A stretch of 63,217 bases of DNA, filler included, from Salisapilia sapeloensis CBS 127946 (taxonomy: Eukaryota; Protista; Oomycota), in the NCBI GenBank assembly GCA_023334545.1. It is 6 parts of 6 records of this genome, joined end to end, with 100 filler letters (N's around TTAATTAATTAA, not from the genome) between each part and the next. Parts side by side here need not be neighbours in the genome. Positions count along the whole stretch, not along the records: positions 52,383 to 60,985 come from JAADVB010000483.1; 5 more parts are not named here. One strand, written 5' to 3'. The stretch's first letter is position 1, and every line of letters begins with the position of its first letter. Below are positions 2,924 to 60,985 of this stretch, one piece after another. The notes under the pieces were generated by a model, which had not been told where the DNA came from, searched no databases, and saw only the letters and a list, made by a program, of their open reading frames with translations. A program made the translations under genes and the position numbers.

Positions 2924-5086
2924 ATGGGTTCGGAGGAAAATATACAAGTAGCTGTTCGAGTTCGACCACTAGCCGATGGCAAGGGATCTGGATCGCTTGC
3001 TTATGATGGAGAGAATGTACTGGTATCGAATAACCAAACGCAGGCAACGGCAGCATGCTTTCCATGCAAGACATATCTATCTGGAACTGTGTCACAAGAG
3101 GAAGTTTTTCAAGCGACTAGGTGTGGAGACATGGTCGAGTCTGCTTTGGACGGGTTTCCAGTGACGATATTTGCATACGGGAATACTGGAGCTGGAAAGA
3201 GTCATACTATCTTTGGACAGGAAGATAAGTTTAATGGTAAGAAGAAAAGTGTTCAGTCGACAGACGGACTGCTGCCTCGAATTGTTACGCGTATGATGGA
3301 AACGATTGAAACTCGAAAGCAAGAGCGAACGTACAAGATTCGCGTTACGTCTGTAGAAGTTTATAATGAGCAAGTGAAAGATGTATTTGATACCAAGCGC
3401 GAAACCGTTGCTGTACGATATTGCCGGCAGAATGGGTACTACCTAGAGAATGCAACCGTTGTTGAGTGCGAATCTACTGTAGAGCTTGTACGAGTGGTGA
3501 AGTTGGCTGCTGCACAGCGGACGAAGTGTAGCCACCTTCTAAACGCACGTTCAAACCGTAGCCACTGCATCATCACAATCTACATAGACTCCATTCCAGT
3601 GGACACTTCCAACGGTCAGCTACGCCGATATGGAAAACTCACAGTTGTGGATTTAGCTGGCAGCGAGCGTGCGAGCGAGTCTGGTGTAGCTGGACAGCAA
3701 CTCCGCGAAGCTGGACATATCAATAGGAGCCTCCACTCTCTAAACCAAGTAATTCAGGCCATGAACTCTCGTGATCGATCTCGTCACATACCTGTTCGAG
3801 ATTCTAAGTTGACAATGGTATTCTGCTAGGATATAGTTTCTGGCGAAGAATTCACTGATAAGACATGAATGTAGCTTCTTGCTGATGGACTCGGTGGGAA
3901 TAGCAAAACACTGATGATAGCTTGCGTCCATTCAGCTGCTGAGTTCGCTCATGAAGCTGCTAGAACATTGCAATTTGCCATGGGTGTTGCAAAAATCAAG
4001 AACAAGCCAACAGCAGTGCTGAACCCTCATGTAAGGTCTTGTCCGTCTCAAAAGGAAGTAAATCATTAATTATTGTATCCGCGTGGCGTAGGAAAAACTT
4101 GTCGCCGCACTTAAAGCACAAATTCGAGAACTACAAGAGGAAAATCGCATACTACGTATGCGTTCAGTAACACCAGGATGTAAGTTATTAAATGGATGGA
4201 TTCATGACGTCCGTATCTGAGCGTTAAGCATAACGATTGTAGATTTCACAGATAATCCAGTTGAAGGCGAAAGCGAATATCGACCACATCGCATAGAGCG
4301 AGGAGAAGCGAACCAACTAGCTGAGCGCAGGTCAGAACATCCTGGTGATTCTCTATCCAATCCATACGGACCTCGCCGTGTGCTAACATCCGACACAAAT
4401 GTCCGCGACAGTCTCAGAATGCTAAAGTATATATATTTATTTGCATATTTACCATATTTTTCATCATTTTTTATAGGAAAAAGAAGATTGCTCGACAGCT
4501 ACAGCACCGACCCAGCAACAACTTGAATGCGTACGATAGTAAACATCCAATTCTGCGTCCTTTGCAAAGACAACCGCTGGCTCCCGTGAAGCGACACCAT
4601 CAGAGCACGCGAAATGTTACCACAAATCAAATGACCATAAGCCGAACAGTGCAAGGCCCTGTTCAAGCTCATTCGTCCACTGATTTTGCACCTGCAGTGT
4701 CAAGTATTACATCGCAGCAACCACACATACAAGGTCACCACCCTTCAAGATCAGTGGAAACTTGGGCAGAACCTCGCAACTGTGAGACTCAGCCGGAAGA
4801 AGATCCTTTACGAAAGTTACTAGCCAGTTTAGTATCAGACCCGAGCGAGAACAATACGACGTATCATCCACCAGCGCCAGTACGTTTGTTTTCGGTAGAC
4901 ACTCTAGCTACCAGCTCATGTTTTTGTCTATAGGTACCGTCAACGAAACTAGAGTATGTATCTTCCTTTATACCCAAAGATACTACTTACCCTTCACTAC
5001 CATGTATTTTTAATAGAAGCGAGAATAATGAAGACAAGGAAGATGATCTAGCGCGCCAACTCTTCTTACAGCTCTGTAGCCTCTAA
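2924..5086 (+). CDS. Kinesin motor protein, KIF12/kinesin-16-like (multi-exon)
   Basis: NIQVAVRVRP, P-loop FAYGNTGAGKS, switch I NARSNRSH, switch II DLAGSER, and spliced LLADGLGGNSKTLMIACV. A coiled coil follows (EKLVAALKAQIRELQEEN). The stop is placed at 5084-5086 after DDLARQLFLQLCSL. The subfamily call is tentative. Confidence 0.9.
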
Positions 5087-5212
5087 TACATAATACTACG
5101 ATTACGAAAACAATTTGAAAAAACATCGTTTTCTGAGTATGGAATTGTCCAATGAGATGTGATATAGCACCAATATACTACATGAGGAAGAAATATTTTA
5201 TTATCTACCGCG

Positions 5213-6426
5213 ATGGAAGAACCGCAGAATCAGCAGCGGAGTGAGACACCCTTGTTCTGGTGCCACGAATGCTCCGAATATGTTGATAGGGTCATTGACG
5301 TCGACACGCAAGAAGTGTCCTGTCGACAATGCACGAGCTGCTTTGTCGAGGAAGTCGAGTCGGTATGGAAGACAATACCACGACATGCTATTAATACCGC
5401 CCATGACTTTGGTATAACTCATGTAATGCATTACTAGGATGATCCACCGGAACAATTTTGGGAAGACAATGGTGATTCTATTGGTGCGCAGAGTGACACC
5501 CACCGGTCCGCTCGCACGGATGCACTCGGCTCAGTACGTTCTTGCGCCCATATCGTTCAAACGCAACATCTCACAGGATGCTATTCATAGTTTTATAATC
5601 ACATGATGGACGGCCGAGCTCCACAAACGGAGAACCATCGGATGCGTGCAGAAGATCGTAGCGGAGAAAGCGAAGCAAATGGACACGAGCACGGTGAGCC
5701 ACCTGCCGGCATCCAAGAGTACGTATTTATTGCTACTATGCTCTTACTTAGTCTCATGGACGAACTATAGATTCCTTCGTATGATCACACAGGAAATGGG
5801 TGGACAGACTGGACAAGGCGGTGGACGCACCACACGCCGTATGATGACTCGAAATGGCCAGCCGATCGAAGTGTACTTTAGTGAAGGTGAAGTAGGCGGA
5901 GCATCAGGCCTCTTTGGCGCTTTGAATGGCATGATGCCATCAGGTATGGCCAGCGATGCCGGAGACTACGTCTTTGGCAACTTGTCCAGTGTCATCAATC
6001 AACTCATGCAGAACGATCCCAACAGAGTACATATGAGAGTCTATATACATGTCGGTACCCATGCTAAATGCCATCAACCGCTTTTCAATAGCATGGAACA
6101 CCACCAGCTGCAGCCGACGCTATTGAAAAGCTGCCGAAAGTCGAGATTTCGCAAAGCCAAGTGGATATTGGTGCCGACTGCCCCGTATGTAAAGAGTTGT
6201 TTAGTCTAAAGGAAGAAGTGCGAGGTATGCCGTGCGAACACAACTTCCATCCCGATTGCATCCTCCCGTGGCTCAAACTAGTACGTTACTTGTTTTTATA
6301 CTTTATAGCACATCTCTAACGCTTACGTCTACACAGCACAATTCGTGTCCCGTGTGTCGATATGAACTGCCAACTGAAGATGAGGACTATGAAAGCCGCA
6401 GACGGTCGCAAACGTCGGCAGAGTAG
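5213..6426 (+). CDS. RING-H2 E3 ubiquitin ligase, RNF126/RNF115-like
   Basis: N-terminal zinc ribbon FWCHEC..CRQCTSCFVEE. Spliced C-terminal RING-H2 [39 protein letters not shown]. Confidence 0.9.
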
Positions 6427-6703
6427 ATTGGCTAATTGTTTCTCAACTCGCTCTTTACGTACTGTACGAAGGACCTACGTGTCTGCATCCGACAGCTTAT
6501 GAAGGAGCGAATGACAAGGCGCTCGGCCATTGCATCTTTTCCATGCCTTGAATTCATTTTTTGCCAAAGATAAATGCAGCTGTATCGTATATGACGATCG
6601 CAAGTTGAAACTCCTGTCTAGAAGTGACCATCAATATCAAGCGACGCCAGTAGCTTCGTTCCATTCGCCTCTCTTGTTCCTCTCTCTTGTGCTATAAACG
6701 TTC

Positions 6704-7811
6704 ATGAAATCAGCTTTTGGAAGGAAAGAAGCAGACTTGATAGAGGCCATAGGTACCTATGAGGTAGGCTCTTGCTTTGCTTGTGAAATGATTCATGGAT
6801 CGGCATATACGTATATGATTGTTTAGCTTCTTGTCGCGATTGCAAGGTCCAAGAATCCAGACTTTGACTTTATAGATGAAGATCAGGTGCAAGATGGTCT
6901 TCGAGGTACTCGTACATGTATGTACACGATATGACTATGGCTCAACGACAATATCTTGTAGAGTGTCAACTGTGTTTATGCCGGATCAAAAGGGTAGAAT
7001 TGGAGGAGATGATCCATACGAAGCGATGTAAAGGAATTTTAAAAGGAATCGATAGCGAATGTGAAGATTTGGCAAATGAAATTAAAGGAGAGCTGCATCA
7101 AGTGATTGAAGCAGCTTTCAATTGCTCTTCGGTACAATCTGTGTCGTTGGGATTGCTGCCTTACATATGACGCTCAAATGACCTAGACTTATTCTGCCAA
7201 CCGTCGAGCACAAGCACTGATGGAACTTGTGATTCTCATGCTGGTCGCCGAGGTACGTTCTCTACAGCTACGACCACCTTGGTAAGTTCACCTAACATTC
7301 CACTTAGCGAGAACAAGAGGCTCGTCATGCGTATACGGAAGCAGTTGCTATCATTCAAAGCTCGGAATCCATTGATATGGACACCCACCAGATTGTAAAT
7401 CAATTCTATTCGTCTCGCTTGACTCCTTCGAACATCTAGCCTGATATGTCTGTAGATGCACAGAGTGGATGAAAGACTGAAAGTGTCTAACAGTAACCTG
7501 GATGCTTGCATCGTTGCCAAATGTCCGTCTACCGAGCAGACCCAATGCATACAAGAAGTATACATCCGTGAGGCTGGAAGTGTAGACAAGGACCTGACCA
7601 AGTCTCAACTCAGCAATCTTATTGCCAGCTTCAACGTTCGTCCTACGCTCTCCGATGACGAGCTACATAAGATATGGACACAGGTATATCCCCACTTCAC
7701 TCGATCAAGTAGAAACCCTCTATACTCCTGTGCATGTAGATGACCAACTCAGATCCTATCGCTACCAACGTTTCGTACAGCAAGATACTCGAATGGTGTT
7801 CCTACACTTAA
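6704..7811 (+). CDS. Hypothetical multi-exon protein with degenerate EF-hand-like C-terminus
   Basis: Hand splicing from ATG 6704 (MKSAFGRKEADLIEAIGTYE) through several GT-AG introns links the short ORFs at 6916 and 7456. It ends LTKSQLSNLIASFNVRPTLSDDELHKIWTQ/MTNSDPIATNVSYSKILEWCSYT*. Confidence 0.55.
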
Positions 7812-7913
7812 AGCAATGCATGTTTACAAAAGATGCTGCTCAAGAGCGCTTTTGATTCTCCTTATCTTGTATGCCGCTACTGTTGTCCTATTAATGCATT
7901 CTTCTTTCGCTCT

Positions 7914-10050
7914 TTATGTGCACTGGGCTAGCGCTCGGTTCGCAAAGTACACCACGTCATTATCCGCATCTTGCGCGAGCGCCTGCAAACAAGGCTTCAC
8001 CTGTCCTTCCACTGCAGATGCATCAACCTTGGGCGTCACGGCCTCGAGTGTCTTGGCCACGTTAAAACGAACGTTCGGGACAGGATCCTGCTGTGCCAGA
8101 TCAACGGCAAGCGGGATCAGGTGCTCCTGAATCGTCTCTGGGTTCATGGCTTCGCACAGCACGGCAACGGCATGCAACGCCGTCAGTCGGTGCAAGTAGT
8201 TCTCATCACCTCGCATGGTCGCGATGCGTGGTAGGATGTGCGCCTTGGCCCACTCGACGCCAAATGTCTCTGTCAGTCTCTTCAAATTAACAGTCGCAGC
8301 TTCGCGAATCGAGTAGACACTGTCGTTCAGCCAGGACATGCAAAGCTCGAGCAGCTGCTCTTCAAAGTAGCTCTGTCCGAGTTGCGCTGCGAGCACAGGA
8401 ATGTATTCGATGATAGCGAGACGGACGCGCCACTGTCGGTCTTCCGCGAGTTGGCTGATGGCTGGCATCAACGATTGCGAGAGGAGTTCAATGCCGACGA
8501 CGTTATTGCCTTCCTTGAGATTCGAAATCACGTTTAGACGCACCTCGGAGTTCTGGTCATTCAATAGTTGTAGGAAAAGAGGAAGAAGGTGTTCTATCGT
8601 AAGATCTCTGCCTAGACTAGGAGCTAGCTTCATCACACCAGCCGCGAGGGCAGAGCGAACGTGATCAGACAAGTCTCTCGACAACGTCTGCAAGCACGGA
8701 ACGACGCGATCGACAACTTGTTGTGGTGGAAACAACTTGCAAAAGCCAGTTACCTGTCCGACATGCATAAGTATTGACATATAACGAGATAGGAAGAGGG
8801 AGGATGTACTTTAGACGTTGCAGCAGTACGCACTTCAGCTTCCGAGTCTTCTAGCAACGCGACAAAGCAGTCTCCGAGCGACGCGTTGATCGTATCGTTA
8901 TTAATCGCGTCACAAAGGTCTGGGAAGCGATTCGCGACGGACCATCGGACACGCCAGGAACTATCTCGAGCAGTATCGAAGAGCACGGAAAGCACTTGAG
9001 ACGTTAGCACATCTGCCGGAATCTGTTTCACGAGTGCAACGGCGTTATCGACCGTATGGATACGAACAGAGTCTTGCTGGTCTTTGGCGAGAGATAAGAA
9101 AAGCGGAAGCATCTCATTCGTCGCGACTTCTCCCGACATCTTTCGCATCGTATGAGAAACGTTCACGAGATTGATACAAGATACAAGGACGTACCGTAGC
9201 GACAAAGACGCCAAAGGCACTAGAAGCAGCCTTACGGACCATCGGTGTATCGTCACGACATAGCTGCGTAAAGAGCTGACGAAGCTCCGTCTGGAGCTCT
9301 GTCGAGAGAGAAGCATAGCCGATGTGGAAGAGGTTGCAGGACGCGATGCGAGATGTGAACCTGTCGACAGAAAACTTAGCATAGTAGACAAGCATACAGT
9401 CTACAGGGCAGCATACCAATCGCGCGTGACGAGACGTCGGAGTGTCGGGACAAAGTGCTGGGCGATGCTGTCTGCGTCCATGGACTCGACCACTTTGCAG
9501 ATAGAACTCACAGCCTACATTTACATTAGCGTATGGTACTGATAAAACGTGATAGAGGGGGTACCATGTCTCGGACGGACGCTTCATCGACAGTAGCGAG
9601 AGACTCGAGTGGTCGTAGAAGCTGGTGGGCGTTAGCTGGACCACCAACGACATCTACAAATCCTCCGAGCTCTTCTGCCATAGCTAGTAGGACTTCATCC
9701 TCATCATCCAAAGAGTCTACGACATGCACATTTAATCCCATTCTCGAACGAGTACGAAGAGGACGAACCATTGAGGAATGGCAAAAGCTCTGATTGTGTT
9801 CGCTCCGGTCCAAGTACTGAGGCTATCAAGGATGATTAATACACATGAGTTTGCCTATCACCTACGAGTCTACTACCGATGATGTGGATTTTTTTAATCG
9901 AATTCAATCGGAGTTGGACGTCCTCATGCTTGAGTTCGTCCACTAGAATCGCGACAGGATACATGCTCTCATCTATATATCCACACCAACATTATTGCCC
10001 AAGCCGTATATAGTATATGGTTCATCTGCACCTGTCGTCGCGGTAGCCAT
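7914..10050 (-). CDS. PPP2R1A: Protein phosphatase 2A scaffold subunit A (PR65, HEAT repeats)
   Basis: Spliced N-terminus [36 protein letters not shown] repeats, [24 protein letters not shown] and D.DVVYFA end. Confidence 0.97.
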
Positions 10051-52382: not shown

Positions 52383-52650
52383 ACCAAACGAGGAGTACAA
52401 GAGCAAGTGATCTTTCGTCTCTGATGCAATCGGGATGAAATACGCTTCGACAAGACTTCAAGGCACGACTGGTGCTCGAGATGTGCAAATTTGAAAAAGC
52501 GCGCGAAAGAGTCACTCGACTTGCTAAACTCTTCGCTTTACTTGCGCTATTGAGCTCTTCCCTTTTATTTCAGAACAGGCATAGTACAGTGATGAACGAA
52601 ATAATTGGTCGATATTTGTGACTCGCACTGTACGGCGTCCCACGGAAATG
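52383..52650 (+). repeat. Dispersed degenerate repeat, copy 3 (abuts the LINE 3' end)
   Basis: Aligns to the copies at 29.3-29.7 kb and 42.1-42.5 kb. Confidence 0.85.
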
Positions 52651-52654
52651 GCGA

Positions 52655-55600
52655 TTTTTTGTGTGACAGAGGTTTATTTAAATTATATGCCTCCTTGGAA
52701 TCCCTAAGGATTCGCCCCTATGGGGAGGTTGGTTTGGTTCATTTTGTTGCGGTATCGGTGTGTTGTGTCCAAATGATAATTGACATATAGCCCACGTTAT
52801 ATCCCGATAGCTGGCTGCTGCTAACCAATCTTGAACGCTCCAACGAGGACTCCTACCTGTCGCTTCAAGTTGGTAGAGCATTCGATTCCAGATACTGGAA
52901 GTCGCGCGCTGTCCCGCCCAGTCTGACATGTTGTAAACTTGATTATTTCGTTGGCTCCAACATTGTGCGGCAATGGTCATACAGCCTGCCTGCTAGATCT
53001 TATCAAGAGCTTGATCATGCTCTTCTGTATGAAATTCTGCATATTCCTTCATACGCTCGAGTAGGGACTTTAGTTGCTCCGGGCTTAGACGTTGCCAAAT
53101 AAGCAGACAAGCTTTCTCTGGGTCTTCTTCCAGAAGTCGTTCCAGTCCCCACACCACGCACCAGTACCTCCAGACCGGTCGAATTACGCCACATGTCCAG
53201 AACAGGTGATACCTTGATTCCTGCTCCCGCTTGTACACATCGTATTTACAGGTACGTGGAGTCGCTTCCCCTTGGTAGTGCAGCTTCAACTGGTAAGTGG
53301 ACGGTCTGCACCAAAACCGGTGCTGATAGCTTGTTAATCTTCTTGGCTGATGTCAGATCTGACGAATAGTTTGCTCTCGCAGTTGTTACAGCATTGAGTT
53401 GGAACCGCTCGGGCTTCTATTTTTCCATCATGATATCAAAAGCTGCGATTTGCGTTGTATGCAAAAATGCAAACAACTCCAGTGCATACGACTCCTTTTG
53501 ACTCCGGTGTTTTCCAGCAAGTGCCGGTGAACCCAAAGTTTCTTGGAGACCGGACTCTACAGTGACATCCAGAGCGATCGTTGTTTGGTCGTCTTCTGTT
53601 AACCAATTCCCGCAATCTCTATTCCACACCACTATGTACGACTTTGAAGGGTTGCTGCTTATCCCAGGCCGACTTTGGAGCTTCCTGTCGGCTGCTTGAA
53701 ATCATTCGGGTCCGTACCACCTTGCCGGTGATTGCTGCCAGAGTTCTTCAGTCGTCCACATTTTGGAGTCCTCAGTGTGGTTCTGGAGCACTGCCGACGG
53801 CGTTTGAATGACAGTTAGAGCCACCCATCGTCCCAGTCTTACCGCGCTGATATGTTTCGGAGGGTCGTTATGCGGGATCCTGATCGCATAATTTCCATCT
53901 CCATGGTGTTGTATTTCCAGTTCTGCCAACGTACATGGTCGAAGTGCTACGTAATCTTTGCGCGTGAGGGTTTTACCTGTTGGTGTGCATATCCTTGGAT
54001 CCTCCACCCACGAGCATCGGTTCCAGTTGCTGCTTACCGCTTGGTTACTGGACAGATGCTGTAGTGGCTCCAACCAACGGATATGCAACACGTGTCCTGT
54101 GCAGTCTGATACTACATATGCTGGTAATTTCCATTGGACTCCTTCCTTGCTTTCCGGTCACTCCACCTCACCGGGGAGAATTCAGTGCGAGAATTGTTCC
54201 AAGAGCAACTTTCCACATTCGTACGGGTTCAGCTTGCTTGTCATACGTGTGTTGCGATGACTCGGTCATGGTCTCGGCGTGATCTGGAGCGTCTGTACAA
54301 AGGTAGGTACGTGGACACCACTGAGATCTCTCCAGCATCTCTGATAGATGTCTTCTGGTGCCGTTCCTTATCTCATGGCTTCTCGTGCCGACTGCGTTTG
54401 CATGGCCGCGTCAATGTGACTCAATCCCGCCCCTCCTCGCTATTTAGGCATGAAGAGGATGGAAAGTGGCAGTTGGTGACGACCTGGGCTGATTTTCGGT
54501 GTCAGGTTCCATAAAAATTCTTTTGAATGTTCAGCAGTTGTATCCGATGTGCCCTGGACGGTCTGACCCATTTCACTGTATAGAGGATGCTGGGTAGAAA
54601 GATGCTATTCAGTAAAGCGATTCGACCTGGTATACGGTTAGTTGCCTTCCCTGCACAACATAATCGTCGGCGCACATGTTCAATCCGTTTTCCCCAATTT
54701 GCTTCTTCCGTGCCTTTCAGACCGATTTGAATGCCCAGATACCTGGTCGTTTCATTCGGGTCCAATCTTGGGATTCCATGAAACTGAGATCCCACTACTG
54801 CAGTGTCGAGCGGGATATGCACACTCTTCTTGGGTTGAATTTTCAATCCCGCTAAAGTTGCAAATCTACGCAAGTGTTGAAGCCCTTTAGGTAGATCGTC
54901 GCCTCTCTCTAGGAAGATGGCTGTACCATCCACGAAGGAGGACACTTTATGGTCCTCTGTGCAGGTTGTCGACGCTCTGATACCAGTCACCTCTGGGTCT
55001 GTTGACAGCGCTTCTCCTAACATTTCGACCACAAGCAAGAAAATCAGTGGCACCAATGGGCAACCCTGTTTTATACCTGAAGTGATGGTTATGCTATTCG
55101 AGAGATGCTTATTGACCTTAAACACTGCAGGCGTACATTGGTGCATTGTCTCAACGACCTGCTCGAATTGTTTTGGTAAGCCTACTTGGTGAACCGCAGC
55201 CAATAAGAAGGTCCGGTCCACTGAGTCGTAGGCCTTCCGAAAATCAAGCAAGGTAACACTAGAACTCTTCTCCATCGTCCGCTTAGGATCTCGATATTTC
55301 TTCGTCAGCACCCGCTGCATTAGGATGAGTGAGCGGCTAATCTGTCGGCCCCGGACGAATCATTGATGGCGCGGATGCACCAGTGAGTTCAGCACACTTT
55401 GAAGTTGTTCAGCTTAGATTATTGCGTAAGCCTTATATACAGATTGTAGAAGCGAGATGGGCCGGCAATCGAGGGGATTGGGTGAATCCCCATTTTCCTG
55501 AGCGGCAAGATCATCGCTTCTTGGAGTCGAGTTGGCAGCTTTGCCTCATGTGTCCACTGATGAAAGTGGACCAGCAGTACTGGCGCCAATTGTTCCGCAT

Positions 55601-58600
55601 AATCTTGATAAAAGTTGTTTGCGATTCCGTCCGTGCTTGCCGCCTTGTGCTTGGATAAATGTTTGATCGCATACCGAACTTCCTCCAGATCGATCGGTCG
55701 TATTAGACGCTCCTGTTCTGTGCTACTTAGCCGTTGAGTCGAAGGCCCAACCCACTGCCCAACGCCTCTTGTACTTCTTCTTGCGTTAGGCTGTGTGGTC
55801 GATGATTTAAAATGGGAGATCAGGCTGTCGCCATCAGTTTGGCTATTTGCTGACTTTCCATTGCCGTCCTACCCTGTAAGCGTATGTCCGTTTCTTTCTG
55901 GTTCGCTTCCCACGCCGATACTCACTGGTAGAAGTGCCGGACATAATTCGGATGTTGTGTGAGATAGTCACCAAATCGAGCTTGAGCAATAGCTCTGCGT
56001 GTCGTTTCTTGCTGATGAAGGTGCTCCTACCAGCTAGAAATTTTTGCATGATAAATTGCTCGTCTCTGCCGTCGACGTCGCACCCGCCGACGTGCTGCTT
56101 TACTATCGTGCCGCTGAATGGCATAAAGGTCTTTTTTCGTGATTTCCCACAATTGCGGATGCTCATCACCCAAGGTTCGTTCTGCCCAAAGCGTGAGCGC
56201 ATCTTGAAGACGCCTCTTGATTGTGTCTGGGTTAGCACTTGGGATGGGATAGACGGCTGGTTGCGGGCCTGTAGACCTACAATACGGCTCCATGATAGCA
56301 ATGTGGAGGATTACCATCGTATGATCCGTCATCACTGCCGAAGACATGTTATCGAGGCTACGAACTTCTCATTCCGGGGGCACTTTATAATAGAATCTAT
56401 CAAGTCTGCTAACACTCTTCTGGCGCCAATCGGTGAAGCGTTTGAGCGGATCTCTCCAGTCCTGTTCAGCCACATCGGTTTCCAGGAAGATGGCATCCGC
56501 AAGTTTGTGCTTGACTGTCAGCTGTTGAAGAGCTTGACTTTCGGGGGTCTGTCCAGCACGTCGCTTCGGTCGCAGTCGATCCACTGCTGGATTGAGCACA
56601 CTGAAGTCGCCTCCAAATATGCATGCTTCTGTGTGTGGTAATGACTCGCTCAAAGTTTGATACACCATTTCTTGTAATGGTCCTCGCTGTGACCCATAGG
56701 TGTTCACGATCAAAAAGGAGTTACAGCGAACCGCCAGAACATGTCCCGGGATGGTGAGGGACGGTTCAGGAGCTACGGTCGCGTCAAAGGTTGGAGCGAC
56801 TAGGATGCCTACACCAGCGACATATCGCGACCTCCCGGACCAGAACGCTAGCGTCATACTGGAAGCTGCCATTCCCCCAATATGTTTCCAATGGCTTCCC
56901 ACTGCTTGTCGCTCGTCTTCCGAGAGACAGTGAGTTTCTTGCAAAAGGAGTATATGCGGGCGTTGTGCCTTGGCTAAGGATTTCCAAGCTTCCATCCATT
57001 TATGCCGATGCTTTATGGTAAAGCCTCGGACATTCTGGGTAGCAATAGTCATTTTTGTTTCAAATGGTCGGGACGGCTTCCATGAGGGCCCACTGTCTTC
57101 ATAGAAGTCTGCATTAAGGTGAAGGTATTGGGCAAAGAGGTCTTCGAGACCTCTGCCCTGGCCACGTGTGGAGATCATGACGGTTATTGGGAGCTTGGAA
57201 TGCCTGATGCCGAGGCAGCAAACCGCGTCCTTAACCATAGATCTAATCCACTCCACTGCCTACTCGATATTGCCAAGTTTACGGCATCCTGTAACTCAGA
57301 GGTTGCCGCGTATAGATGGTGCATCTGCACTAGTGTTCTCCATGGTTCTCTATAGAGGTTAATATCACTCGCATACATGCGATTAAAATCTTGTTCATAG
57401 TTTCCAATGGTAATCAACCAGAACGCCAATTCCTCCGGTTTAATGTTTCCGCATCACTTGAGAATGCCTCCATTAGGCAGCTCGTAGGCCGCGGGAGTAC
57501 GACAGAGCTGAGGAAGAATCCCAAAGACCATAGGCTGTTCCTGTTCCAGAATGAGCTATGTTTCCGTGGATTTCATCTTCTTTTTCAGTGCTGGATCCGC
57601 GTTGGTTTTATTGCACAGACAGAGAATATCCCCAAACAAGAATTGGGTCATCAATCTGCTGCTATACAATTGCTGTGCTGTGCTGAGGCGATTGAGGGCA
57701 TTTGAAGGTAGCAGAAACGATCAGAGAAAGTGGGAAAGTTGCAGGCTCTCCCTACAACAGATACGCTACAAAGCCCCCACCGGTGCTGAGAACTTTGGGA
57801 AGGGTTCCAGTGAGTCAGACTTCCATAGCTTTTGATGCTCATTCCAGTATGCGACCATATCCTCCCACGAATCTACTCTGAGCGATTTCTTCTCTAATCG
57901 CGGTGCGAGTCCCAGCCGTCCCTCTTGGAAATGCCGGCCAATATTGACTAGTGGGTCCGGCGGGTCACTTATTTGCGAGAGAGTAAATTCACTGTCCTCT
58001 TGACTAGCGGTAGTGGACTGAGTGACCGCCTCCATTGTCATGAGGCTATGCGATATAATATCCAGTTTATATTGTCGTAACTTATGCCGTGGTACATCAA
58101 GTGGTGGCTGAGTGGACTTTCTTGCGGATCGTTTAGATCCGTTTTGAGTATCCATTCCATATCTTCCGGGGATAGTATTTCGAAAAGCGGATGAGATGAT
58201 ACATCTATGTTTTGATGGTCAAATCTGTCCATCGCCTCATCATCGTCGTCTTCGTCCTCGTGCTCCTCCTCTTCGTTCTCATCCATGTCTATTTCAATAT
58301 CCTGATCGTGCCACTCCATTGATGTGGTGTCCACAACTTGATCCTTCTGCTGCGCCTTTCGTGGCTCCCAAATTGTGCTGGTGAAGTGGTTCGTCTGGAA
58401 GACGAGTACTAGCGGTGGGGCTTGGCTGAGGCTCTGGCCTACCGAGAAAGCTAACTCCAATTCTTCCAGCCAATGGTCCATGGCTATGATTTTCTCTTTC
58501 GCCAATCCAATCACCGTCCCATTGATCTTTACCGTGGCCAGGTAAAACTTTTCAAAGTAGAGCTGGGGAAGGTCAGACGATGCATTGATCACATAGATCG

Positions 58601-59457
58601 GTCGGTAGAGCAGTTTCGTGGCGATTAACAGCGTGTCGATATTGCCCCAGGAGTAAAGGGACAACGGAAGTGCGTTTTTTCGCTGACGTGGCAAGCTGTG
58701 AAACATATTGGTTGAAACAACGAAGCGAATCTTCAGCCGATGTGACTATAACTGGGAACTTTTGGGTTTCGAGCAGAATAGGTCGCTTTGAGTCCGGAAA
58801 TTCAAGCTCTTGATGATAATGGAAGCCAGCTATGATGCCACATTGGAGAAGCCGGAGCCGCTCTTCCATGATTACCTCATTGTCTGCCATAACATCTTCC
58901 CAGTTGTAAAGTCCCTGCAAGATGGCCATGTACTGGCAATTGCCATTACTAAGTGTTACAGTTTGGCGCATACCAGTTGCTACCAGCACCTCCTCAAGCG
59001 TACTGGTCTCCGATAACAGGGTGCTTAGCTGGGCTGGACCTTTGCCGTGATAATCTGAAGTTGTAACGGGAAGTTGCATGCATGTATCCCAAGCTGGGGT
59101 AACATTCCGGATCTTCAAGTGGGTCCTTGTATTGGAGCATGTGATGCATATACAAAGGTACGAGGAACATGAATGGCCGTTAGACCTTTCCATACTAAGC
59201 TGAAGATTAAGGAGATTGTATTAGGATTTAGTAGGTATATAGAAACTCAAAGTCTAGTAGTCTGATTAAAGCTAAATACAATCAGTTCTCATTTTGCTTT
59301 CTAAAGCACAAGTGTCTTCCACACCTTCCGTACTTTTAGTATCAGAGCTTCATACTCCGCGTTTTACGCTTCCCTAACGTTGAAAGGGCTATCGTTGTGA
59401 CTTCCGTCACACCCCAGGGGCCGCACCCGCAGCCGCTGTTGCTGCTGTGTCCGCCAT
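52655..59457 (-). mobile_element. Near-full-length but inactivated non-LTR retrotransposon (L1/Tx1-like, APE-RT) with OTU-domain ORF1
   Basis: ORF2 from ATG 57052: APE endonuclease (TQNVRG, LLLQETH, IFGGDF, SRLDRFY) and RT (LLDFRKAYDSVD, GIKQGCPL.PLIF, FVDG in place of YADD, YLGI). It ends with a C-terminal ES..HLFW.C motif, AATAAA and a short A-tail at 52655-52660. Many stops and frameshifts. ORF1 remnants lie at about 57060-59457. Confidence 0.93.
59062..59411 (+). mobile_element. Solo LTR candidate inserted in LINE ORF1
   Basis: Begins TGTAACGGG and ends CCGTCACA. AT-rich centre with AAGTGTCTTCC. It interrupts ORF1 upstream of the OTU domain. No matching 5-bp TSD (GAAGT vs CCCCA). Confidence 0.6.
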
Positions 59458-59489
59458 GGTCGGTGAAAGAACTGCAAAGTGCTACCAGG

Positions 59490-59726
59490 TGTCACGGGAC
59501 TCTTGCTACCCATGACTGACTTACACGTGCGTTGTGGGGAAGACGCTTTAAGACTAGAAGTGATGTTGATTTGGTAATTTAGATCTTCTTGCAGATCCTT
59601 TCGGACTACAAGTACTACATATACCTTGTATGAGAGAAATGGCAGGTCATTTAAACACGTACCAACTAAGAACCAAAGTAAAGGTAAAGTAGTGCTAGCC
59701 TAAAGTAACGGTAGAAGTCTGTTACA
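59490..59726 (-). mobile_element. Second solo LTR candidate (opposite orientation)
   Basis: On the minus strand it begins TGTAAC and ends GTGACA, and shares AAGCGTCTTCC with the first LTR. No clean TSD. Confidence 0.55.
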
Positions 59727-59729
59727 GGT

Positions 59730-60636
59730 TATCCACAAAGGCAAGTGAATAGGAGTATATGACAACATCACTATCGCTCTGGATGCCTCCCTAAGTTCAG
59801 GACTGCAACAGGTGCTGGGACTACCCGCCTTAGCGCCCACATCGCAACACAAGCAAAAATCATGCCAGAAGGAGCTTCAACAATACTTCCACCAACCGTA
59901 TCTAACAGCGCTGGCACTGATCAAAGAGAGATTGCAAATGATGGCTGCAAACTCATCTGTATTAGCGGCGATGCAAACGCAAACGATCCAGGAAGTACGG
60001 AATCAATCCATGGATACCACACCGTACCAAGCGTGGTTCTGGTACCGACCGGCGTACAATCGACTCAGCCTCCATTACCGGGATGAATCCAGTCCGCGAC
60101 TGTGTCTGTATGATGCATTCAGCAGTCAGACCGAATCTCTGGATAACATCATTAGGATTACTCGGTGGCCAGCAACCTATGGCAACGATGAGCAAAGATT
60201 TGGGACCTGGATCGACTGATCGTGAGCTCTCCTATCGACGAGTTTCGATTGGTTAGTCGCCTCTCAGAAGCCACCCCAAACGACAGATACCCTCCTTCAC
60301 CACGTCGTACAGTACGCAGGAGTATTTACCGATAACCACCTTGCTAATATAACGGAGATCTGGAAGCTCGGATGCACCATCGTAGCAGTACACTGCTGGA
60401 ACCGAAGGAATGACAATCTGTACCGTACACAAGTCTGGAATGGCACACATACGGCAGTGACCACATGGTGCAATATCCTCACTCAACTGAGAGTCATAGA
60501 ACGGAGTCCGCGATGGAATCAACAAGGCCAAATAACACCATCAAGTTACAGAGACATCACAACCGCATAGTGGGCGGGCCTTAACGGACTCCAAAGAATA
60601 AAAAGCAAGTCTATTTTACTCTTTGTCACAAAAAAA
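59730..60636 (+). mobile_element. 5'-truncated LINE copy of a related subfamily (ORF2 C-terminus)
   Basis: TIALDASLSSGLQQVLGLPAL vs TIALDVTVESGLQETLGSPAL; LHYRDESSPRLC.YD vs LHYQGEATPRTC.YD; CWNRRND..ERSPRW..SYRDIT vs CWSQRNN..GRSPRW..SYRDIT. Ends AATAAA..TGTCACAAAAAAA. Confidence 0.88.
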
Positions 60637-60792
60637 TAACGCTATATCGAAAACATATTATAATAGTGATAGTGAGTGCGAGCGGCAAATAACCTCTACG
60701 GCTGCATCACACTAAAACGTCACCGCGAACGAAACAAACTGTCCATCAATGCAAACTTATTAATTCAATTTTTATACAATAAAAACATCATG

Positions 60793-60985
60793 TTACTCCT
60801 CTTCCTTCCAGCCCACATTCGTTACGTCATCCTGTCGGAGTCGAAGTTCAGTCATCTTCAGCCATGCTAGCTGACGATCACGCTCGCGGTCTTTCAGATC
60901 GAGTTCCACTGAGCTAGTCCTCCACACACGCTCAATCATCATGTCCCATTCCTCTGAATCCGTCGAAGCACCTCGCATGATGGAA
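60793..60985 (-). CDS. 3' end of a gene, probably the C-terminus of the START-like gene across the gap
   Basis: Open frame from the gap to a stop, ending DRQLAWLKMTELRLRQDDVTNVGWKEEE*. Same strand as 61086-61382 and directly downstream of it. Confidence 0.45.

Follow-up and report, generated by a model that had tools for sequence, protein, structure and literature searches.

A decayed OTU-like domain in an L1-like retrotransposon of Salisapilia sapeloensis and its counterparts within ORF1 of related elements

Introduction

Can a long interspersed nuclear element (LINE) carry, within the protein of its first open reading frame (ORF1), a cysteine protease domain of the OTU deubiquitinase family? 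This question is raised by a decayed element of the oomycete Salisapilia sapeloensis CBS 127946 (assembly GCA_023334545.1), found in a stretch of 63,217 nucleotides, filler included, that joins six parts of this genome end to end and is called the window in what follows; the element lies in the part at 52383-60985, which comes from JAADVB010000483.1. A preliminary description of this DNA had placed three OTU hallmarks, in order, at 58300-59061, upstream of the endonuclease (APE) and reverse transcriptase (RT) of the second open reading frame (ORF2), and had read them as part of the LINE. To our knowledge, LINE ORF1 proteins (ORF1p) are seen as RNA chaperones that have no enzymatic function. 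If a deubiquitinase-type domain does reside in ORF1p across deeply diverged elements, LINEs would have a means of their own to act against control by ubiquitin, much like RNA viruses, and the ubiquitin control of retrotransposons would be opened to direct test.

The comparisons described below make both the OTU identity of the domain and its linkage to the LINE very probable. The window region itself is probably what decay has left of an OTU-fold cysteine isopeptidase domain, a module built into the ORF1 protein of an L1-like LINE lineage that occurs in Phytophthora and related assemblies. What such a module would do for the element can be stated more tentatively, and is weighed here against several other readings.

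Layout of the domain in the window

All three hallmarks, namely the Cys loop, the loop SWGNIDTLLIATKLLYRPIYVI (the WG loop hereafter) and the His loop, are located on the minus strand in the order described, and they are followed, also as described, by an acidic tract (Table 1). In a three-frame map, the frame at 59220-58576 (-) bears TLSNGNCQYMA, and the frame at 58745-58041 (-) bears the WG loop, PLVLVFQTNHF and the acidic tract. One frameshift joins the two pieces, as had been noted, and it falls in an A6 run about 20 nt from the position of 58655 given before. Across both pieces the domain comprises about 235 residues; the stretch between its Cys and WG loops includes a helical insert of some 90 residues. 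The acidic tract is found at the matching place in the Phytophthora copies. The two pieces were searched separately and then placed by alignment (alignment A1).

Table 1. Features of the decayed element, listed from 5' to 3' along the minus strand; positions are those of the window.
Feature	Positions	Strand	Evidence and remarks
N-terminal half of OTU-like domain	58675-59028	-	Cys loop and start of helical insert; profile and alignment A1
Cys loop TLSNGNCQYMA	58924-58956	-	Sequence
Cys codon TGC	58936-58938	-	
Frameshift site, A6 run	58674-58680	-	Frame map and sequence; joins both domain halves
C-terminal half of OTU-like domain	58293-58673	-	WG loop and His loop; profile
WG loop SWGNIDTLLIATKLLYRPIYVI	58587-58652	-	Sequence
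His loop PLVLVFQTNHF	58383-58415	-	Sequence
His codon CAC	58386-58388	-	
Acidic tract 3' of OTU-like domain	58227-58307	-	Sequence
Decayed ORF1 C-terminal remnant	57769-58218	-	Another frame; weak alignment to relatives, common W..W..FP pattern
APE endonuclease domain of ORF2, 296-aa piece	56372-57259	-	Pfam Exo_endo_phos 1.9e-13; tblastn to L001 ORF2 1e-39
Reverse transcriptase of ORF2, three frames	54332-55868	-	Pfam RVT_1 3e-19
RT catalytic motif FVDG	54925-54936	-	L001 counterpart FVDD
ORF2 C-terminal remnant	52996-53352	-	Pfam zf-RVT E 0.019, below threshold

Linkage of the domain to the LINE

Six other loci were compared with the window copy, five of them from NCBI assemblies and the sixth, L002, a Logan contig. 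The five are L001 from Phytophthora nicotianae CJ01A1 (ANIX01004313.1), L003 (GCA_002215365.1), L004 (GCA_012552325.1), and L006 and L007, both from P. rubi. Tblastn between loci and frame maps place the OTU-like domain within ORF1, directly upstream of APE(-RT), at 6/6 loci, and the order is the same throughout: ORF1 with the OTU-like domain, APE, and then RT where the contig reaches that far. L002 stands well apart, as its ORF2 shares only about 27-30% identity with those of the other loci.

The L001 element is apparently intact (L001:4071-12456). Its ORF1 (4071-8273) encodes 1401 aa, and its ORF2 runs from 8233 without a stop as far as the contig end, giving at least 1408 aa, with an ATG at 8239; the overlap of the two, which lie in different frames, is about 35 nt. 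Residues 59-300 of this ORF2 hold APE and residues 580-804 hold RT, in one open frame, and the nearest solved relative of the protein is human LINE-1 ORF2p (E 1e-51, compared with 2e-20 for R2). In both L001, where it occupies 6378-7160, and L006 the OTU-like domain lies in a single open frame with ORF1 sequence on both sides.

Because the order ORF1(OTU)-APE-RT is kept at six loci and the ORF1 of L001 is one open frame, the domain is considered to belong to the LINE, as had first been proposed for the window copy. The window by itself, with a single decayed copy, would also accommodate an OTU-like stretch that derives from a neighbouring host gene or from a Helentron fragment and is a chance neighbour of the LINE, and Helentrons, which encode OTU proteases and APE, are indeed present in oomycetes (PMC4067079). 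However, the same arrangement recurs in several species and in the separate lineage of L002, and the open frame of L001 holds, besides the OTU-like domain, a CCHC knuckle as well as a conserved C-terminal domain. Moreover, APE is followed here by RT in the same ORF with no Rep/helicase ahead of it, whereas Helentrons have Rep/helicase before APE and no RT (PMC4067079). Within the reach of these data, an origin from a host gene or a Helentron was therefore discarded on the strength of the conserved order, and a chance neighbourhood is extremely improbable.

Breaks of frame or stops between the Cys and WG loops occur in four of the seven copies, at the A6 run in the window, at about 2650 in L007, at about 2555 in L002 and at 9935-9937 in L004. 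Programmed frameshifting was considered as an explanation and rejected, since the breaks differ in place and direction and since L001 and L006 remain in one frame; these breaks within the helical insert look like independent decay. As a separate observation, the ORF1 of L003 (L003:9127-11926) has lost about 380 internal residues, among them the CCHC region and the Cys loop, and keeps the WG and His loops.

Statistical support for the window match

A hidden Markov model (HMM) was built from six other elements, with the window excluded, and run against 271 six-frame segments. The N-terminal piece matched profile positions 4-119 (E 7e-14) and the C-terminal piece profile positions 119-237 (E 1.4e-18), and the next-best of the 271 segments reached only E 1.8. 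That both pieces abut at profile position 119 is the pattern predicted by a single frameshift within one domain. The match between the window and the related elements is far beyond chance.

The N-terminal piece matched L004 by tblastn (E 3e-7), and phmmer and tblastn with the C-terminal piece gave P0001, P0004 and P0005. A word-indexed search with this second piece returned no matches in the length range used, and an exhaustive phmmer search with it gave five matches only, one of which (P0002) is artefactual; the genomic loci were taken from the relatives found in this way. This candidate relative, P0002 (L005; GCA_031841145.2, CM063346.2), was rejected as spurious, in that its E of 7e-7 against the window piece arises from summed repeats and the family profile has no match in it, and its locus was set aside. 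P0002 is a predicted protein of 2657 aa with about 19 tandem repeats.

The predicted fold and the points that weigh against it

An AlphaFold2 model of the L001 domain, for which alignment A1 served as input, has a mean predicted local distance difference test (pLDDT) of 77 and a predicted template modelling score (pTM) of 0.77. In this model a helix begins at Cys26 and a strand at His220, which, together with the G-N-C context of the Cys, the W-G loop and the aromatic residue after the His, is the arrangement of OTU deubiquitinases (PF02338; OTUD1/3/5, yeast Otu1/Otu2 and nairovirus vOTU). Among the Foldseek matches in the Protein Data Bank (PDB) that were listed (to rank 47), OTU deubiquitinases appear throughout, with a best E of 1.9e-5 at a probability of 1.00, and these include nairovirus vOTUs, Cezanne, A20, a Wolbachia OTU, OTUB2 and OTUD1. 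VIA-align gave OTU proteases for 50 of the 50 entries listed (Z 9.6-13.1), nearly the whole core being aligned; the top entry was OTUD3, with Z 13.1 over 139/141 residues at a root-mean-square deviation of 2.7. The neighbours in the ESM Atlas are likewise OTU clusters (score 0.91), which is taken as a lead only. An OTU fold of the domain is supported by this structure prediction for L001 and by the fold searches, and the window pieces align with the L001 domain across its whole length.

Several points weigh against this reading and against that of a built-in ORF1 module. The structural model was built from a shallow alignment of 11 rows. The window domain is only 23-30% identical to its nearest relatives. 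Pfam OTU finds the correct region in four relatives at sub-threshold values only (E 0.0048-0.06), with 17.8 bits for P0006 (E 0.0048), 16.1 for P0003 and 14.7 for P0004 at a gathering cut-off of 23.3, and the family profile reaches OTU chains in the PDB only at E 0.3-0.6, with OTUD7B and a nairovirus OTU at 0.35-0.6, among unrelated chains. Sequence taken by itself is suggestive of OTU identity, and it stays below significance by every sequence-only method. In contrast to typical OTU deubiquitinases, the domain carries its long insert, has Thr or Asn instead of the usual Asp at Cys-3, and has S, E, A, I or T at His+2 across the seven copies, so that the usual third catalytic Asp/Asn is not conserved. 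In addition, the RRM/CCHC part that lies ahead of the domain in the relatives left no trace in a profile search of the window. The two window pieces gave no OTU match in a Pfam scan, and phmmer of each piece against the PDB returned nothing relevant. The OTU identity claimed in the preliminary description is carried by the fold match of L001, with Foldseek and VIA-align in agreement, Pfam OTU remaining below threshold.

Conservation and catalytic residues

Pairwise identity in the domain among the seven elements is 23-44%, except for L006 and L007, which are 99% identical. Invariant across the copies are G-N-C-Q, W-G, T136, P211 and V213 (a P.V pattern), His220 and H-[YF], the Cys in L004 being the exception. 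The catalytic Cys is kept in 5/6 copies and the His in 7/7, and both are present in the window copy, where their survival had been pointed out before. The sole loss of the Cys is a change to Ser in L004, a copy that also has an in-frame stop.

These data bear on whether the OTU fold might be catalytically weak or dead and be retained as a ubiquitin-binding or scaffolding module. The missing conservation of the third catalytic residue and of the Cys-3 Asp would fit such a module, as would the sub-threshold Pfam OTU scores. However, neither the Cys and His nor the G-N-C-Q and H-[YF] around them vary in a family of otherwise low identity, and the only copy that has lost the Cys is itself interrupted by a stop. 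Furthermore, the turnip yellow mosaic virus (TYMV) protease PRO functions although it has no third catalytic residue (PMC3968130), so that the lack of this residue does not preclude activity. As the Cys and His do not vary, we regard a dead fold that binds ubiquitin as improbable. An active enzyme is considered somewhat more likely than not.

Other modules of ORF1

In L001, ORF1p consists, in order, of an RRM-like region (RRM, RNA-recognition motif), a CCHC knuckle, the OTU domain with its long helical insert, the acidic tract and a conserved C-terminal domain. The knuckle, CX2CX4HX4C, is conserved in five relatives. An AlphaFold2 model of residues 300-600 of L001 ORF1 (L001:4968-5870) is of low quality as a whole (pLDDT 52); where it is confident, at model residues 40-138, it has only RRM matches, the top one being the RRM of human L1 ORF1p (2w7a; Z 7.2 over 86 residues). 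The RRM assignment is accordingly suggestive.

The preliminary description had set the OTU domain against the RNA-chaperone type of ORF1 that is usual in such elements. Its placement in ORF1 holds, but a replacement is not indicated: the intact relatives appear to carry the OTU domain alongside the RNA-binding modules usual for the L1 type, namely an RRM-like part and the CCHC knuckle. The resulting protein resembles L1-type ORF1 proteins, those of plants and protists and the RRM of human L1 ORF1p, in its CCHC knuckle and, from a low-confidence model, in its RRM match, and the ORF2 of L001 is nearest to human L1 ORF2p. It differs from them in its length of about 1400 aa, far above the usual, its enzyme-type domain, its acidic tract and its extra C-terminal domain.

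L001, L003, L004, L006 and L007 have in common a [FIL]-G-G-x-R motif that follows closely on the acidic tract. L002 has HGR at the [FIL]-G-G site, and the window copy is without GG. This [FIL]-G-G motif could be a candidate self-cleavage site for the OTU domain.

Possible roles of the domain

OTU proteases of viruses remove ubiquitin, process polyproteins or do both, and PRO of TYMV keeps the polymerase of its own virus from the proteasome (PMC3968130). A comparable sequence of events may be envisaged for the LINE. ORF1p would coat the RNA of its own element, and because it binds this RNA, it would gather the OTU domain on the LINE particle. In that position, the domain might strip ubiquitin or a ubiquitin-like modifier from ORF1p and ORF2p or from nearby host proteins, and the removal of ubiquitin might shield the particle from ubiquitin-dependent degradation or restriction, in the way known for TYMV PRO. 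The cutting of the long ORF1p could be a second role, compatible with the first. The preliminary description had likewise raised ubiquitin removal from the particle or from chromatin, counter-defence and self-processing as possibilities. By analogy with the viral enzymes, deubiquitination is put forward, tentatively and at somewhat less than even odds, as the main role.

A different view would be that the main job of the domain is to cut ORF1p into an RRM-CCHC chaperone, a protease and a C-terminal domain, as the arterivirus PLP2 and the tymovirus PRO do with their own polyproteins. The unusual length (1401 aa) and modular make-up of ORF1p are consistent with this, and so is the [FIL]-G-G kept in the five Phytophthora-type copies, as Gly-Gly is the site behind which OTU-type proteases cut; both roles, moreover, are performed by the viral enzymes (PMC3968130). 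The GG motif, however, is absent from L002 and from the window copy, and self-processing would be compatible with deubiquitination in any case. As the principal function, self-processing appears rather unlikely.

A broader reading, possible but held with still more reserve than the deubiquitinating role itself, is that an old L1-like lineage, now represented by the Phytophthora elements and a distant relative, fused an active deubiquitinase into its RNA-coating ORF1p, which would give it a particle-borne counter-defence resembling that of the viral OTUs, with the enzyme present in many copies on each particle and stripping ubiquitin from the particle or from restriction factors of the host. 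L001 of P. nicotianae is a natural and apparently intact element, so that its domain can be expressed and assayed without reconstruction.

Relation to known systems

OTU domains have been described in accessory ORFs of Helitrons and Helentrons and at the C-terminus of the Ginger1 transposase (PMC2836005, PMC4067079). These cases are similar to the present one in that a mobile element has its own OTU with conserved catalytic residues, and roles in the ubiquitin pathway or in self-cleavage have been proposed for them (PMC2836005, PMC4067079). The carriers in those cases are DNA transposons, whereas here the carrier is a retrotransposon that lacks long terminal repeats (non-LTR) and has APE and RT, and the domain is part of its RNA-binding ORF1 protein. 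This embedding in a retrotransposon ORF1 protein also distinguishes the LINE domain from the OTU deubiquitinases mentioned above.

Among non-LTR elements, those of the NeSL type carry a Ulp1-like protease domain. In addition, ORF2p in Haematococcus and Symbiodinium bears Josephin or OTU domains at its N-terminal side, a 2026 preprint noting in passing one OTU-ORF2p fusion. Both are, like the present elements, LINEs bearing a domain of the ubiquitin or ubiquitin-like protease kind. In those cases, however, the protease belongs to the ORF2 or pol protein, or the element is of the restriction-like endonuclease type, while the domain described here lies in ORF1p, between the CCHC knuckle and the C-terminal domain, and recurs across Phytophthora-type elements and a distant lineage.

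A full-text literature search, whose coverage excludes Repbase Reports and most subscription journals, yielded no description of an OTU domain that forms part of the ORF1 protein of a LINE, or of one in LINEs of oomycetes. In a term search of an oomycete retrotransposon survey, ORF1 and protease have one mention each and ubiquitin none (PMC5348765). The placement in ORF1 and the recurrence across elements thus seem to be undescribed in the literature searched, and the idea of a transposon-borne OTU is itself already known.

The rest of the window element and its flanks

Downstream of the OTU-like domain, on the same strand, the window copy continues with a remnant of the ORF1 C-terminal region, for which a profile search in the window was not significant, and with APE and RT pieces of ORF2 (Table 1), which agrees with the placement of the domain upstream of an APE-RT ORF2 in the preliminary description. 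The RVT_1 match derives from RT pieces that end with the frame at 55359-54505 (-), and the window RT is 40% identical to residues 577-905 of L001 ORF2. With its frameshift in the OTU-like domain, several frame breaks in ORF2 and FVDG in RT where the relative has FVDD, the window copy is dead, as had been recognised at the outset.

Given the missing N-terminal part and the change in AT skew near 59400, the window copy is most likely 5'-truncated, and 5' truncation is frequent in LINE copies. Alternatively, the lineage represented in the window may have a shorter or different ORF1. No clear 3' tail or target-site duplication follows the stop of ORF2 (at about 52996), in a piece that ends at 52383.

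Finally, the sequence on the other side of the element, at 59400-60985, seems to be unrelated flanking sequence. ORFs beyond 59400, for example those at 59812-60219 (+) and 60256-60540 (-), match nothing in Pfam and are not similar to the N-terminal region of ORF1 in the relatives, and the AT skew of the plus strand reverses its sign near 59400.

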